Assembly (NCBI RefSeq): GCF_028641065.1
Contig: NW_026575913.1
Location: 62,001-126,000, forward strand
Direction: 5' to 3'
Length of the DNA stretch: 64,000 nt
Origin: Leucoraja erinacea
Taxonomy: Eukaryota
The notes under the pieces were generated by a model. The model saw nothing but the letters and a program-made list of their open reading frames with translations, was not told the DNA's origin and did not search any database. A program made the translations under genes and the position numbers. Positions 12,844-60,479 of this stretch are shown here, piece by piece; positions within the stretch are counted from its first letter, which is position 1, and each line of letters begins with the position of its first letter.

Positions 12844-12913
12844 ATGGAGCTACCTATAATCCCACAGATTGAAGATATTTACTATCCCATTCTCGCACTG
12901 ATTGGCATTCCAG
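12844..12913 (+). CDS. GPCR-2 exon 1 (MELPIIPQIEDIYYPILALIGIP)
   Basis: ATG at 12844, 23 codons plus G, then donor gtgagt at 12914. It is collinear with GPCR-1 exon 1 and absent from the ORF track because it is short. Confidence 0.9.
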
Positions 12914-13446
12914 GTGAGTTAGAAACTGATATTCGTTGATTTCGTCCTTTTACCAAAGAGAATGCAAATGGAAACAAGGAACTTGCCATCTAGGAGCTAA
13001 CAATCTCGCGAGGTTTGCGATGCGAGTGGAACGATCAGAAATATTGAAATCCTGGAATGATCGATTTGAAGTGCAGGAAGGAAATGCAGTTGTTGAAACC
13101 GAAGATAGACACAACAAGCTGGTGTTATTCCGCGAATTAGATGTTGCCTGACTCGCTTAGTTACTCCAGCTTGTGTCTATGATAGCTTTGAAGTTTCATT
13201 GTAAAATACGTTTCAAGTATGCACGAAGAAGAAATATGATTTCCTCTATGAGAATGTTTTATAAGATGCTTTTCTTATTAAATCGCTCCAGCACCGGAAC
13301 GATGAGATGCAGGCAAAACGGATATACAAATATTGGCGATTTGTATTTATTAAGAAAAATTAGGTTAGTGCAGAAAACAAGAATAAAATTCAGGCATGAT
13401 CATTGAAAAACGTGTCAGGTGCAAGTGACAACATGGTGAACGCTGT

Positions 13447-16918: not shown

Positions 16919-17030
16919 ATTTACTCCAACGCGCTGTGTTTTATTTATGAAAGATTTGGAGTTAATCGCCAAGTGACGATTTGTCCAAAGCGGTTAATCT
17001 TTGTGACTGCGCATCTTTTTATTGTTGCAG

Positions 17031-17956
17031 GTAATCTTATGGCGATTCTGGTTCTATCTCGTGGGAACTGTGGTCTTTCCAAATGCATCACACGTTACAT
17101 GGTGGCCATGGCAGTTGCAGACCTACTGGTGATAATATTTGATGTGGTATTATATGAGATTAATGACATGTATTTTCCGCTTTCCTTCTTGCATTATACT
17201 CCCGTTTGCAGCCTCATCATTGCCCTGGTGTTCGCAGCCATTGATTATTCGGTCTGGCTAACCGTTGCCTTCACATTTGACCGATACATCGCCATTTGTT
17301 GTCAGAAGCTGAGATTAAAATATTGCACCGAAAGAACTGCCGTCACAGTTATTGTGGCAGTTGGTGGATTAAGCTTTGTAGAAAATATCCCAATTTATTT
17401 TGAAAACGAGCACCTGGAGATCATTGACAACGTGCCATGGTTCCGCAAAGTGAAGTCAAGCCTCTCCAGTTTACCAATATGGGTTGCATACTTCTTCGAC
17501 GACATTAACTTAACACAGTTTGCACCTTTCCTTTTGATTGTGCTGCTTAATGCCCTGATTTTACACGCAAATCGGATAAGGAAGGGACTCCGGGTGGACG
17601 GGAAAAGCGATGATTGCACTGGTCCGGAGATAGTAAACCGCAGAAAATCGATCATTTTACGGCTCTCCATCTCAAGCTGTTTTATAATGCTATGGATGGT
17701 AACCTTTGTACATTACATATGCACACAATTTGCAGGCGTTGAGTTCATGCTCACAGATTACAACGATCCTTTCGCCATAATGGAGCACACTGGGTATATG
17801 CTGCAGTGCCTGAGTTCGTTCACCAACACATTTATTTATGCAGTGGCTCAGGCAAAGTTCAGAGAATCATTGACGAATACGCTGAAATATCCTTTTACTT
17901 TATTGAATAAATTAGTTCTAACCTCGGACCAGAGCTCACGTAGCGTTTTTAAATAA
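17031..17956 (+). CDS. GPCR-2 exon 2, class A 7TM receptor, GPR139-like family (possibly decaying)
   Basis: Acceptor ttgttgcag|GT AAT CTT ATG gives IGIP-G-NLMAIL. It contains MAVADL, TFDRYIAI, NRRKSIIL and TNTFIY; the spliced product is 331 aa. AATAAA lies at 17991. Confidence 0.88.
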
Positions 17957-35400: not shown

Positions 35401-37289
35401 ATTCTGTTTGACCAAGTACCTCTACTGGCCTTTCTTTAGTCTATAATTCGATGGAAATAACCACAAAATCTCACTCTATCTATAATTGAAACCTTTTAAT
35501 TGGTGATCTTATAGCGCTATCTAAAACCATGAGGGCGATTGATCAGGGGAATGCACTGATGCATTTACCCAGGGTAGGGTAATCAAGAACCAGCAAAAAC
35601 AGGTTTAAGGTGAAGAGGAAGATTTAGTAGGAACCTGAGAGGGAACCTTTTCCACTCAGAGATTACTGGGTGTATGAAATGATTATGAAATGAGCTGACA
35701 GAGAAGGTAGAATAACAACATTGAAAAGACACTTGGACAGGTACATCGATAGAACATGCTGAGAGAAATGTTGGCCAAACGCTAGCAAATGCGACTAACA
35801 GATGTAGTATCTAGTTCAGCTTGGAGCATTAGGCTGAAGTACCTGTTTTATTGCTATATGGCTCCATGACTCTTTGTTAGGAGAACATAAAACTGGCAAA
35901 TAGAGTTTAATAATGGAAATTATGTGCTCACATACTTTGGTAAGAGCAATTCAAAGGAAGCTATTATCTAAATGGAGCGAGATTGCAAATGAGTGGAGTA
36001 CAAGAGATTCAAATGCTTAAGGTGAAAAAACAAAAGCCAACAGGTAGATGCAGCACACAATGCAGAAGGTGATTAGCATATTGCCGTTTAAAGTAGGTTA
36101 CAATTGTAATTATGGTACATGACGTTGTTAAGGACATATCAGGAGCACTGTGTACAGTTTCGTTCTCAGATTTAAGAAAGGACATATTAATATTGGATAT
36201 CAGCTAGAAGAGATTCTTGGAATAAGCAAGTGTTGCCTTACCATGAATGGCTGAAATCATTGGCTCCGTATTCCTTGGAGTTAACAAAAATCAAAGTTAA
36301 CCTTATGAAGGTATTAAAGAGGCATGATGGGGTGGTGAATTGGTGGATAATGTGTGGTGGAAAATGGAAACAAAGGGAGAAGACAGTTCCATGTAAAACA
36401 GATATTCAGCTGCACCGCGTCCAACCATATCCACTGCATTCAGTGTACACAATGTGGCCTCTTCTACATTGGAGAACATAGCATAGACAAGTCAATCATT
36501 TTGCAGAAAAGCTGCATTTTGACACATAGGAGGTTAGAACATTGGAGATATTTAAAGAGAAATAGGTTATATTATAAAATTACAGGGGATTGTATCCTAT
36601 GTGGAAGTACAGTAAAGGACTTGAGGCCTAAGTCAGATCAGCTGTGATCAGCAAAAATTGCAACATAGCGCTCGCTATCTTGTACAAATGCAGGATAGTT
36701 TATTAAGAAATACTGTCATGTTTAGTAAATTTAATTTAACTCTTTCCATATAGTTCTGATCCTGCATTTCAATCACATCAATGAAATCTTCTATTCAGCG
36801 ATAGGTTAGCAGGGAACGTTCTGGTTTGGTTGAATATTTTGATAATCTGAGGAGGGAAATTAAATATTAGACAACCGTGAAATAGACAATGGACAAAAGA
36901 TGCAGGAATAGGCCATTCGCAGAGCCGAAGACAGAGCTTAAAATGATGCTTCAACTGTTGATTCATCCCACATAACATCTTCCTTCCAGATATAATGGTA
37001 CAGCACCAGACATCTGGGTTGATCCTGTCTACGGATGCTGTCTCTGCGGAGTTTGTACCTTCTCCCTGTGACTGCACAGGTTTTCTCCAGGTACTCCAGT
37101 TTCCTCCCACATTCCAAAAAGAGACATGCAGGTTTGTAGGTGAATTGTCTTGTGTCCCTAGCATGTGTGAGTGATTGGTGGTTGGTGCGCACTCAATGGG
37201 TTGAAGTGTCTGTTTCAATGCTATGTCTCTGAACTAAACTAAGCAAAAAACATAATATTCTTCCAATTAGTTTAGTTCATACAAGTTCT

Positions 37290-41625: not shown

Positions 41626-41733
41626 CTCTCCTGTTTTTTCTCCACCAAACAATTACTGCCAAGCCAATAGCCAGCGATATCAGCACACACACGGCAATAA
41701 GGCCAATGTGCCTGTCTTTCTTCCCATTTCCTT
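41626..41733 (-). CDS. MHC class I-like gene: connecting peptide/transmembrane exon (EGNGKKDRHIGLIAVCVLISLAIGLAVIVWWRKNRR)
   Basis: Acceptor ttttcag at 41734 and donor G|gtaaga at 41625; 108 nt, phase 1-1. About 22 hydrophobic residues are followed by a basic stop-transfer stretch. It joins alpha3 in frame (IIW-E-GNG). Confidence 0.8.
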
Positions 41734-43077
41734 CTGAAAAATAAGAATGCATAATTTTACAAATCAATTGTTAAGCTGTGCAGCTAAATAGATTGGCACT
41801 GTCTGAAGACTTCAGGGTGAAGAAGGGTCTCGACCCAAAATGCCACCTATTCCTTTTCTCCAGAGATGCTACCTGACCAATGAGTTACTCCAGCATTTTG
41901 TGTCTATCTTTGGCGCATTTCAAGGTATATAAAATGATATGGTGTTTTGAATGACAGAGTTCTGCAGCATAGCAAAGGGACAATATATGTTCTGTACAAC
42001 TCTATGATCTATGGCACCATCACAGCCACATCTTAATTCAAGAAAGAAGGCGAATTGAAAGCAGATAGATACTGGCTTTAGCCCTATATAATCTAACATC
42101 TGTTTTGGGGAAAATGCTGGATTTCTTTCAATAATGGCAGAACATTTAAGTAATAACAAAACAATAAAGTGCATTAACAGGAAAATTGTAGAACAAGATG
42201 CAGGTACTGATTTACACAAAAGGTTTAGTTTAGTTTATTGTCACGTGTACTGAGGTACAGTGAAACGCTTTTGTTACGTGCCAACCAGTCAGTAGAAAGA
42301 CAATACATGATAGATACAAAATGCTGGAATAATTCAGCGGCACAGGCAGCATCTCTGGCGAACATGGACTCAGTCAGAAGGAGCGTGACCCGAAACATCA
42401 CGTATTCCTTTTCTCCAGAGATGCTGCCTGACCAGCTGAGTTATTCCAGAAATTTGTGTCCATCTTCGGTGTAAACCAGCATTTGCAGTTTCTTTTTACA
42501 TATGGACAGGTTACGTTTCGTTTTGGGGCCCTTCTTCAAACTTTGTTTATGAAATTGATTATGAACTTTATGCAACAGGAACCTGTAGACAATGTATATT
42601 CAAGCAGCAGTAGTTTGCAGGTGTGCACAGCCTAAAATTCAAAAACAAAATGATGGAAAAGCAGAATAGATAACAAAATTGGAATGAGAAACAACAGAAA
42701 TACAATATATTGTAGAGATCCAAACGTCATGAACAAATCAATTTTTTTTAAAGAAATATAGTTTTGGCACACGCGTGTTTAGTAAGGACTTGAGCAAAGT
42801 TCCTGCCGTTGTAATCGGGCACACCAGTTGACTGACGACTGACTCATCACCAACTCCCACCAAAACCCTGTCATGTGATAGTCCCAGCTCCCCTGACGAG
42901 GATTCTACCAATAAGTGACCTGACCACCAGATATCGCCACAATATCAGGATTTTCATAAGATATCTGATCAAGTGATGCAAAGGCTTTTGACATTTGGGG
43001 TAATAATTAGCATGAAAGGAAAAAACAATTCAGAGCAAGCAGAGAGTTGTCTTAATGTTGGCCTTCATAACAATAGT

Positions 43078-50890: not shown

Positions 50891-51233
50891 TTGACATGTA
50901 CTCCCCCAGTGCCTTGCTGTTAATCACATCATGAGGAAAGATTCATTTTTTTTATTTAAACATACCTTTCATGGATTTCAGTTTCACCACTGAGAACCCC
51001 AAATACTCCTTCCTTGTATATTAGTTATTTATTTATTTACTTTTGATACATTTTCTGTTGACAAAGTCTTCTGCTCATGTGGAGAGTGGGAGTCTGATTA
51101 CGTGATTGCTTAGAGCAACACCACGAAACAAAGACAGTTTACGCATCTTGGAACATGGGATGTAGTCACAATTATTAAAATGGAAACAACAGAAGATAAT
51201 GATTATCTATGAAAGAATATTTAACATTCTCAC

Positions 51234-51500
51234 CCCAGATGATAGTCTTCCCACCGGGCAGGCTGCTGTGATCAACATGACAGGAATACTGTTTCCCATC
51301 ATACGGATCATACACAAGGACAGACTTGAGATGATATGTTCCATCGTTGTTGGGTATGACCCCAGAAGATTTGGTCTCAAAGACATGGTGACCATTCTGC
51401 AACCAGCTGACATTGATGGCCGGTGGGTAAAATGCAAACACAGTGCAGTACAGGGTTGAATGATCATCAGTGCGGGCAGCGAGTGTGACCTCAGGTGAAA
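51234..51500 (-). CDS. MHC class I-like gene: alpha3 (Ig C1-set) exon
   Basis: Acceptor tcttgcag|TT TCA CCT GAG and donor TGG G|gtgaga; 267 nt, phase 1-1. Translation VSPEVTL...LYCTVFAFYPPAINVSWLQNG...PNNDGTYH...YSCHVDHSSL...IIW has the C1 hallmarks (C, FYP, W, DGTY, YxC, HSSL). Confidence 0.93.
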
Positions 51501-52015: not shown

Positions 52016-52769
52016 GCAAATCTTTTCACATCGGGCAAATAATTGACAAGTTACGAAATGAGGGTCAATTGGGGAGGGGACAAGCATAAAATTGACAATA
52101 TTTCACTCCTCGTCAATAAGAGATAAAAGGGGCCAGTCATTTGTTTACAAAATCTATTTTTGCAGAGTGTGGTCATTCTCTGGCACTCTTGACCCCAGAG
52201 ATTTGTGAAGACAAAATCATTGGAAGTATTTAATGTGGCAGTAGTTAAACTTTTGAAAGATTTGAGAATTTAGTTCAATGAGGAACTGACACCGAACAGG
52301 AGTTGATGCCTGAGGAACATCAGCCATGGTCATACTGAATGGTGGGCAGGTTTGAGGACCAAATGGCTTACTCGGAAACTTGATAATCAAGGAGAAAATC
52401 AGGCTTCTGAATGATCATTCCATAAGCTAGGGTTCTGTCCAATTGACCACTACCCCATTGCAGACAGTGGACTTTGTTTATGGAACTATGTAGGAAGTAA
52501 CTGTAGATGCTGGTTTAAACCGCAGATAGACACAACATGCTAGAGTAACTCAACGTGTCAGGCAGCATCTCTGGAGAGAAGGAATGTGTCACGTTTCATG
52601 TCAAAACCCTTCTCTAATGGGCTGCATTGCTGAGAACTATATGCTGCACTCTGTAACTTCCCTTTTGCTCTACCTACAGTACCTGAGTTTGACTTGATTA
52701 TATATATGTATGTTGTTATCTCATCCAATTGGATAGCATGCAAAACAAAGTGTTACACTGTAGCTCAGT

Positions 52770-55175: not shown

Positions 55176-55439
55176 NNNNNNNNNNNNNNNNNNNNNNNNN
55201 NNNNNNNNNNNNNNNNNNNNNNNNNNNNNNNNNNNNNNNNNNNNNNNNNNNNNNNNNNNNNNNNNNNNNNNNNNNNNNNNNNNNNNNNNNNNNNNNNNNN
55301 NNNNNNNNNNNNNNNNNNNNNNNNNNNNNNNNNNNNNNNNNNNNNNNNNNNNNNNNNNNNNNNNNNNNNNNNNNNNNNNNNNNNNNNNNNNNNNNNNNNN
55401 NNNNNNNNNNNNNNNNNNNNNNNNNNNNNNNNNNNNNNN
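55176..55439. other. Assembly gap (264 N) adjacent to TG-rich repeats
   Basis: Run of N. Confidence 1.
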
Positions 55440-57330: not shown

Positions 57331-58544
57331 GGCCTGAACATGAGAAAATGAGAAATTGGGTATTTCCTTGGGGCAAAATCAGACTTTTCAGAGACTTGGA
57401 AGCTGCAAGACAGTCCTGGAATATGGTGGATCTCTGCAAGCTGTTCCAGAAGAGGATGTATTGTACTTATGTACAGTGTGACTTGACTGGAGAGAATGCA
57501 GAACAACCATTTCACTGCAGATAGACACAAAAAGCTGAAGTGACACAGCGGGACGGGCAGCATCTCTGGAGAGAAGGGATGGGGTGTCCAGTATCTGCTG
57601 TTACATCCAAACCATTTCACTGCGTCTCTGCATGCACAAAACAGTTATATAAAATGCAGCACATACTGCAGTACTCATGTATGTCAGGCTGTCGTGATTT
57701 TGCAGGTGGATAACTTAACTGTAATTTTTTTTTAAAACACAAAAAATCATGTAGGTGTAACTCAGTGGCTTTGGCAGCATCTGGAAGACATGGTTACGTA
57801 ATGTTTCAGCTTGGGATCCTGCTTCATACTTCTTGCATCTGTTCTTTCTGACTTAACACTTGAAATGACCAGTTCATTTATCGACCGGGAATGCAACTTG
57901 TTGAATGTGAAATTGAGTTTGAAAGGCTGCAACATGTCCAGACAGAAGCTGATTTGTTGCTCCTCAAGGTTACTTTCACCCTTGTTATTATAGTGTAAGA
58001 GATACAGATGGATGGATCATGGTGGGGGTCGAATTGAGAATTAAAGTGGCAGGAATTAGGAATTTTAGAAATTCCCATGGATTGAATGCAGGTTCTCCAG
58101 AAAACAGCCACTCACTTTGTTTCATTGATGCAATGTGGAAGATTACATCATGAAAACCAAGTGCAGTAGATTTGAATGGAAGTGCAAGTGTTTCACGCTG
58201 TTTAGCTTTGAAGAAGTACCTGGGTCTATGGACAGTGGGAAGGGAAGAGGTAAATGGATAGATGTTGCATGCACCAAGACAGGAAAGTAGAGGAAAGTAG
58301 TGGGGATAGTAGACAGACCAGGGAGTGAAAAGGGAATGACTAGTTCAAAATATAGAATGGGGAGCAGAGCAGGAGGGGAGGGAGAAATGGATTGACTAAT
58401 TGAATCAGATTTAAACTGGGATGAAGTACTCAACATGGAGGCTGGAAGAGTGGAAAAACGTATCCCTGCCCGGTCCAATGAGAATATATAGAACATAGAC
58501 CAGTACAGCACAAGAACAGGACTTTCAGCCAGGTTAAACTAAGG

Positions 58545-60048: not shown

Positions 60049-60324
60049 CTTTTCTGGTCAGGTATGTCTTTCCAATTGCATAGTATGTACGCCAATAATC
60101 CACACAGTCATGTTCTAACAAGCTCTTGAAATAACGGTTCATTTTTTCATTCTTGTCCCATTTCTCTTTGAAGGGTTCAGCTATTGGATCATGCACCGTC
60201 CACTTTAGTTTGTCCTTGTCGAAACTAAATGCATATCTTCCGTCAAAAGCCAACTTCAATATCCCTACATTGGGACTGTGATCGTTCACCTGACAACCAA
60301 ACTGACCTTGAGTATAGTGATATT
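60049..60324 (-). CDS. MHC class I-like gene: alpha2 domain exon
   Basis: Acceptor ttctttcag|AA TAT CAC and donor AAA G|gtgagt; 276 nt (the canonical class I alpha2 exon size), phase 1-1. It has HxxQxxFGC, AFDG, W133, KW147, C101-C164 pair, Y171 and G175, and joins alpha3 as LTRK-V-SPEV. Confidence 0.93.
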
Positions 60325-60479
60325 CTGAAAGAAAAACAAAATCATTATTTGATTTATTGTTAAGACTGGGTAATTTCTGATCTCCAGGGTCCAAGTCATT
60401 TCTATATGTCACAAGTAGCAAGGGTCACAGCACAGGTCCCTGCAGAACTCTACTTGTCACTGAACTACAGCCTGAATAT

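Follow-up and report, generated by a model that had tools for sequence, protein, structure and literature searches.

The alpha2 exon at positions 60049–60324 of the window, by which we mean the whole 64,000-nt stretch of Leucoraja erinacea DNA analyzed here, belongs to LOC129716032, a gene of six exons spread over about 64.5 kb, four of them inside the window. From its sequence, we take this gene to be the little-skate ortholog of elasmobranch UGA: its product is closest to the deposited UGA protein, and it falls in the same clade. UGA is an already known family, to which the little-skate gene adds a member. We consider it likely that LOC129716032 encodes a UGA heavy chain that displays lipids in a CD1-like manner via endosomes, where "CD1-like" describes a likely mode of working and not a family assignment.

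Exons and transcript of LOC129716032

The alpha2 domain is encoded by exon 3, which is 276 nt long, lies on the minus strand with phase 1 at both ends, and carries C101, C164, K146/W147, F143, and L159. It is bounded by a pyrimidine-rich acceptor (tttcag|AA at 60325/60324) and by a donor (G|gtgagt at 60049/60048), and its in-frame translation (60050–60322) contains no stop codon. This translation matched positions 93–178 of the Pfam MHC_I model (E = 7.4e-13, 48.9 bits) and the PDB chain 9ch4_A (E = 1.3e-34), similarities that lie far beyond chance. Used as the query of an exhaustive HMMER search, the exon hit one identical protein (P0001, 100%), and besides it just two representatives scored below E = 1e-30. 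P0001 bears the NCBI name [quoted passage not shown].

Three further exons follow on the minus strand. Exon 4 (51234–51500, 267 nt; acceptor tcttgcag, donor G|gtgaga) encodes the alpha3 domain, an Ig C1-set domain that matched residues 182–268 of 9ch4_A at E = 2e-33. Exon 5 (41626–41733; acceptor ttttcag, donor G|gtaaga) encodes the connecting peptide, the transmembrane (TM) helix, and a basic stop-transfer run, WWRKNRR. The coding part of exon 6 (36806–36846; acceptor cctcag), found by a phase-aware pattern search and then read directly, supplies the cytoplasmic tail DYQNIQPNQNVPC and the stop codon.

All six exons are joined in a public Logan cDNA contig of 1,435 nt (L001, run SRR13269316). 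Positions 582–860 of L001 cover the alpha2 exon (60327–60049) at 99.6%, and the next block (859–1127) matches the alpha3 exon (51502–51234) at 100%. Because L001 goes directly from alpha2 to alpha3, we conclude that the alpha2 exon boundaries are used in vivo. The remaining blocks match the TM exon (1127–1235 to 41734–41626, 100%) and the tail exon (1234–1435 to 36848–36643), and the 3′ UTR reaches at least 36643. When L001 was aligned to the parent contig JAMYXN010000161.1, the leader exon mapped ~36.8 kb and the alpha1 exon ~14.7 kb beyond the window end; consistently, tblastn detected no alpha1 exon in the window. As a spliced cDNA joins its six exons, LOC129716032 is expressed. A pseudogene, or a dead or orphan exon, was excluded on account of this full-length spliced cDNA.

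Most NCBI isoforms of LOC129716032 are read-through fusions with a GPCR gene, and the six-exon model is the correct one. Isoforms X1–X4 join UGA exons to a GPR139-like GPCR exon at 3180–2299; these four, and X5 as well, look like read-through gene models. The DYQNIQPNQNVPC tail is identical to the C-terminal end of isoform X6 (P0178, 341 aa) and of three products of short Logan contigs. Two exons present in X5 only (8001–8132 and 3467–3595, both minus strand) give an alternative tail of 70 residues that replaces the conserved one with DYQNI, and they are perhaps repeat-derived, because a similar piece occurs at 12844–12918 on the plus strand.

Several minor features of the locus were also recorded. 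The frame stays open for 18 codons beyond the alpha3 donor (51178–51233, minus strand; GENVKYSFIDNHYLLLFPF, then a stop), and a read-through end of the same kind closes two gene models, P0179 of the little skate and P0188 of Rhinoraja; it might reflect a soluble isoform or else an artifact of annotation. An AATAAA lies at 36699–36704 (minus strand), ~100 nt past the stop codon of the tail exon; it is perhaps not the functional signal, because L001 extends ~55 nt beyond it. The first ~54 nt of the cDNA 5′ UTR are ~81% similar to intronic sequence at 42414–42467, 52525–52575, 57520–57570, and 41859–41908, and since the start of the 5′ UTR matches several such places, the transcript seems to begin within a dispersed repeat. 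The introns of the gene, more than 60 kb in all, are repeat-filled. LOC129716032 sits on an unplaced contig of 249.7 kb (the JAMYXN010000161.1 mentioned above), and its neighbors in the window are GPR139-like GPCR genes, two single-exon genes at 2299–3180 (minus strand) and 17024–17902 (plus strand) that are 57% identical to one another. Runs of N occupy 10306–10463 and 55176–55439, the latter within the alpha2-alpha3 intron.

Placement in the elasmobranch UGA family

Among PDB sequences, the full product matched 9ch4_A best (E = 2.1e-114, 266 residues, gapless), and the next matches were MR1 (E about 6e-48) and bird class I chains (~1e-46 to 1e-48). The 9CH4 entry, released 2026-03-18, is titled "Crystal structure of shark nonclassical MHC CLASS I, UGA", and its closest database relative is a zebra-shark (Stegostoma) protein, P0159 (E = 7e-170). 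Homologs of the skate product at E < 1e-100 were found in sharks and rays only, with the next match, from Xenopus, at 28% identity. These close homologs come from batoids (Rhinoraja, Amblyraja, Pristis, Mobula, and Hemitrygon) and sharks (Heptranchias, Pristiophorus, Heterodontus, Stegostoma, Rhincodon, and Mustelus).

In a quick tree built from 66 ectodomains by maximum likelihood, the skate gene grouped with Rhinoraja (support 99), all batoids grouped together (100), and a UGA clade of 13 members that includes P0159 was recovered (99). Outside this clade, a second little-skate gene, P0022 (XP_055486430), is sister at 98, and a Callorhinchus group comes next (91). Because the tree broadly matches the species tree, LOC129716032 is best read as the batoid ortholog of shark UGA. 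The original prediction had pointed to a reported CD1-like shark lineage for comparison, and the skate gene turned out to be a member of that very lineage, with 9CH4 UGA as its nearest solved structure. The likeness to 9CH4 extends to the groove, where 27 of 37 pocket positions carry the same residue (F99, L114, F143, K146, W147, F156, L159, and L160 among them) and where the ten differences, at positions 24, 25, 34, 45, 63, 84, 95, 116, 123, and 167, are mostly conservative. P0159, in the same clade as the skate gene, ends in a tail with GYNVI. The skate gene is a batoid ortholog, and it differs from the shark protein in having R84 rather than K, Y167 rather than L (an allele-specific difference), F24/V25 rather than I/L, and A45 rather than T.

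We also compared folds. An AlphaFold model built with a 67-sequence alignment reached a pLDDT of 93 (a version with 14 sequences, at 60.6, was discarded). VIA-align placed 9ch4_A first (Z = 30.0, rmsd 1.8 Å, 268 residues, 58% identity), followed at Z = 25–26.5 by the chicken molecules BF2, YF1*7.1, and CD1-1, by class I of duck and shark, and by ZAG, HFE, and MR1. Since these other class I-like folds tie within this range, the fold is uninformative on the ligand. Among predicted structures of reviewed proteins, BF2, MR1, ZAG, and HFE ranked ahead of CD1c.

By its sequence, LOC129716032 is assigned to the class I lineage and is not a CD1 gene. The full product P0178 scored 75.7 bits against MHC_I (PF00129, cut-off 28.3) and 62.9 bits against the C1-set model PF07654 (cut-off 21), and the CD1-type Pfam model MHC_I_3 gave 14.1 bits against a cut-off of 35. 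All 67 sequences share the cysteines of the alpha2 disulfide (C101-C164, which in mature numbering are C98 and C161), and alpha1 ends with N-E-T, which keeps N86 as a glycosylation site. Identity is 35% to chicken BF2 versus 23–24% to CD1c and chicken CD1-1. The skate gene also has Y7, Y59, K146, W147, Y171, and the N86 glycan site, class I hallmarks that CD1 is not known to have. What it shares with CD1 (CD1b, CD1c, CD1d, and chicken CD1-1) is an apolar groove and a short tail with a membrane-proximal tyrosine motif; with chicken CD1-1 the skate model also shares the overall fold (Z = 25.7).

An apolar groove and a tyrosine-motif tail

The original prediction, made from the alpha2 exon, held that this domain had lost peptide anchors and formed a hydrophobic, possibly lipid-binding groove. 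To assess it, HLA-A2 numbering was rebuilt from the landmarks C101, D119/G120, W133, K146/W147, and C164 and from a HMMER alignment to chicken BF2, with the HLA-A2 sequence entering as we presume it to be and not through direct tool alignment. Relative to HLA-A2, the exon lacks one residue between 101 and 119 and gains one between 147 and 156, two indels that offset each other. With this re-derived numbering, all of the listed residues were found again, which confirms the observation (F99, L114, K115, L116, Y122, A123, F124, F143, K146, W147, F156, L159, L160, Y167, W168, and Y171), among them the replacement of the peptide anchors T143 by F and Y159 by L and the retention of K146, W147, and Y171. 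Two entries carry a caveat. The assignment of M152 is ambiguous: because of the two indels it is uncertain by one residue, and position 152 may equally be K. The change of W167 to Y is correct for the window allele but allele-specific, this residue being L in other little-skate sequences and in all other family members.

To describe the groove, we mapped 37 positions onto the alignment, which we take to be the pocket positions of HLA-A2, together with an inner subset of 25 that presumably form the floor and the inward walls. In the window allele, none of the 25 inner positions is polar or charged and 20 are aliphatic or aromatic. The UGA clade as a whole has no D, E, K, R, H, N, or Q at these 25 positions, save for a single exception in one sawfish paralog, and 19–21 of them are aliphatic or aromatic. 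Averages for the same positions across 48 further class I sequences are 3.4 polar or charged and 14.8 aliphatic or aromatic residues (Mann-Whitney p = 3e-8, a value that ignores the kinship of the UGA-clade sequences and hence overstates their independence). By this sequence proxy, the claim of a mostly hydrophobic groove is borne out for the inner positions. Over all 37 pocket positions, mean hydropathy is 0.5–1.4 in the UGA clade and roughly −0.5 to 0.9 in the others; the window allele, at 0.49, is no outlier and lies within the upper range of ordinary class I; it separates cleanly only with the 25 inner positions and not with the full 37. Its polar residues are confined to the rim (positions 34, 63, 67, 77, 80, 84, and 163). 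An apolar interior with a polar rim would suit an amphipathic ligand.

Among eight residues that hold peptide termini, the window allele keeps six (Y7, Y59, R84, K146, W147, and Y171) and loses T143 (F) and Y159 (L), so the full set of MHC-Ia terminus residues (Y7, Y59, Y/R84, T143, K146, W147, Y159, and Y171) is not present together. An alpha1 domain with intact Y7, Y59, and R84 combined with a polar groove had been named as evidence that would speak against a lipid-binding groove; the three residues are indeed kept in the window allele, yet the groove is not polar. Across the UGA clade, position 159 is always L, whereas 143 is F, L, or S, 84 is R, Q, K, or E, and 7 is Y or F. Because positions 7, 84, and 143 vary and 159 is invariantly L, these clamps do not look selected as clamps.

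Within the UGA clade, substitutions in the groove are hydrophobic for hydrophobic. The groove is no better conserved than the rest of alpha1-alpha2 (mean pairwise identity 0.662 versus 0.640, equaled by 32% of random sets; p about 0.3), and its positions are also not hypervariable, unlike those of a classical gene. Four little-skate products (P0178, P0182, P0183, and P0179), which are alleles or paralogs, are 97–100% identical with few variable sites. The classical type of high groove polymorphism was not seen in this small sample, in which two groove positions vary. These pocket positions are 45 (A/T) and 167 (Y/L), and the window has the rarer A45 and Y167.

The cytoplasmic tail of the skate protein is 18 residues long and consists of the basic stop-transfer run followed by DYQNI, directly after WWRKNRR. 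Ten tails of the UGA clade, from nine species, have a YxxΦ motif 5–7 residues past the TM helix: YQNI and YQTI in skates, YENI in sawfish and in manta ray, YESI in stingray, YNAV in horn shark and in a houndshark, and YNVI in zebra shark. Of the roughly 30 other class I tails that were readable, none had it at that place. YQNI is, as we take it, also the tetrapeptide of human CD1b. CD1b–d are internalized via an AP-2-binding tyrosine motif in the tail (PMC10545705), and by analogy the skate YQNI may act in sorting like the CD1b–d motif.

Proposed lipid presentation and its alternatives

UFA and UGA have been described as CD1-like, MHC-linked, and lipid-binding (PMC12562908; PMC10751288). UFA was named as a CD1-like elasmobranch lineage in 2023 from unpublished data (PMC10751288), and a 2025 review, citing personal communication, states that crystal and mass-spectrometry data on UFA and UGA suggest CD1d-like lipid binding (PMC12562908). 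Within the literature library searched, no primary paper on UFA/UGA or on 9CH4 was found. The reading of the alpha2 exon as part of a CD1-like, non-peptide groove, which the original prediction had proposed, is supported by homology to 9CH4/UGA, by two independent sequence features (the apolar inner groove and the YxxΦ tail), and by this secondary report (PMC12562908); for lipid binding by skate UGA, homology and the secondary source are what we infer it from.

We propose the following route. The skate UGA heavy chain would pair with beta2-microglobulin and reach the cell surface, from which the tyrosine motif, probably via AP-2, would carry it into endosomes. There, UGA would exchange cargo and take up amphipathic lipids, with acyl chains filling the apolar groove and the head group at the polar rim (D63, E67, Q77, E80, R84, and D163). 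The lipid would then be shown to T cells, as by CD1b–d. Points against a lipid ligand include the six kept peptide-terminus residues, which make the window allele more class I-like than CD1, the overlap of its full-pocket hydropathy with that of ordinary class I, the background-level conservation of the groove, and the low MHC_I_3 score. With several of these anchors retained, UGA might occupy an intermediate place, presenting in part like a peptide-binding and in part like a lipid-binding molecule.

The same six residues (Y7, Y59, R84, K146, W147, and Y171) speak for a different ligand, acylated or very hydrophobic short peptides of the kind presented by chicken YF1*7.1 and macaque Mamu-B*098, with the acyl chain in the apolar groove and the kept class I anchors gripping a short peptide part. 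This would agree with a gene that is class I and not CD1 by sequence, and YF1*7.1, with N-myristoylated or N-palmitoylated ligands, is among the tied best structural matches (Z = 25.8–26.3). YF1*7.1, a lipid- and lipopeptide-binding MHC-Ib molecule, resembles the skate gene in class I lineage, hydrophobic groove, and fold (Z about 26) but is only 32% identical to it and of another lineage, with no sign of kinship beyond class I. The anchors on which a peptide part would depend are also those that vary across the clade (84, 7, and 143 as given above) or are replaced in it (159, always L), and we regard such peptide ligands as rather unlikely. Small metabolites of the kind that MR1 presents are a very improbable, disfavored cargo. 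MR1 is the second-best sequence relative of the skate gene among solved structures, its chains being the next-best PDB matches after 9CH4, and it holds ranks 2–8 among the reviewed predicted structures. However, the skate gene has neither an equivalent of K43 nor a polar pocket: the column of the MR1 Schiff-base lysine holds K in P0093 and P0118, which are MR1-type sequences, but A in the window gene and, across the clade, nearly always A or T, with I and L also seen; nothing polar in the inner groove could hold a ribityl-type ligand.

UGA might instead be no antigen presenter at all and serve another role, like ZAG (a fatty-acid carrier), HFE, or FcRn, with a groove that is structural or holds a housekeeping lipid. 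ZAG and HFE are among the best fold matches, ZAG is also among the sequence matches of alpha2, groove conservation does not exceed background, and a soluble form might be represented by the gene models in which the frame runs on past the alpha3 donor for a short tail. Yet the product of the expressed cDNA has a TM helix and a sorting tail together with an intact C1-set alpha3 domain and intact class I disulfides, and the review (PMC12562908) reports CD1d-like lipid cargo, all of which leave a non-presenting role distinctly improbable. Two last readings are a class I gene of the classical kind that presents peptides and an exon that is dead or orphaned. In their favor stand the NCBI name of the product and the burial of the gene in its long repeat-filled introns, but T143F, Y159L, the apolar groove, and the very low variation among little-skate sequences contradict a classical gene, and the full-length spliced cDNA contradicts a dead exon. 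We hold this pair of explanations to be scarcely credible.

CD1 is, to our knowledge, absent from bony fish and amphibians, and for this reason when and how lipid presentation originated is an open question, for which UFA and UGA of cartilaginous fish are the present candidates for an ancient lipid-presenting arm. If UGA unites an apolar groove with a sorting tail kept since sharks and rays diverged, presentation of lipids sampled from endosomes would have existed within the class I lineage already in the elasmobranch ancestor, and the UGA pathway would be either truly homologous to CD1 or an old convergence. The skate gene does not alter the specialists' view of UGA. It links the alpha2 exon to the UGA lineage in the little skate, which is a tractable model species, and adds two testable points, the clade-wide YxxΦ tail and the multi-copy expansion in skates with an unchanged groove. 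That UGA combines a fully apolar groove with a CD1b/c/d-type YxxΦ tail for endosomal sorting, the tail being kept since the shark-ray split, and with an expansion of near-identical skate genes that left the groove unchanged, is a statement that we advance tentatively, as possible but short of probable.

The expansion is most evident in Rhinoraja longicauda, where ten separate UGA-like gene models (P0151 and P0186–P0194) lie on one 41.5-Mb chromosome and are 95–100% identical, with nearly identical pocket residues across all ten. From these ten models we conclude that UGA is multi-copy in at least this species, which differs from the description of UGA as "single- or low-copy". In the little skate, a second UGA-like copy (P0179, 97% identical) occurs together with P0022 on contig JAMYXN010000384.1 (127 kb, partly covered by L002). 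P0022 is 38% identical to LOC129716032 and has no YxxΦ tail, and its inner groove, hydrophobic at 22 of 25 positions, is the most apolar of all 67 sequences. UFA is grouped with UGA in two published accounts (PMC10751288; PMC12562908), and P0022, sister to the UGA clade, is a candidate for it; that P0022 is UFA is our guess.
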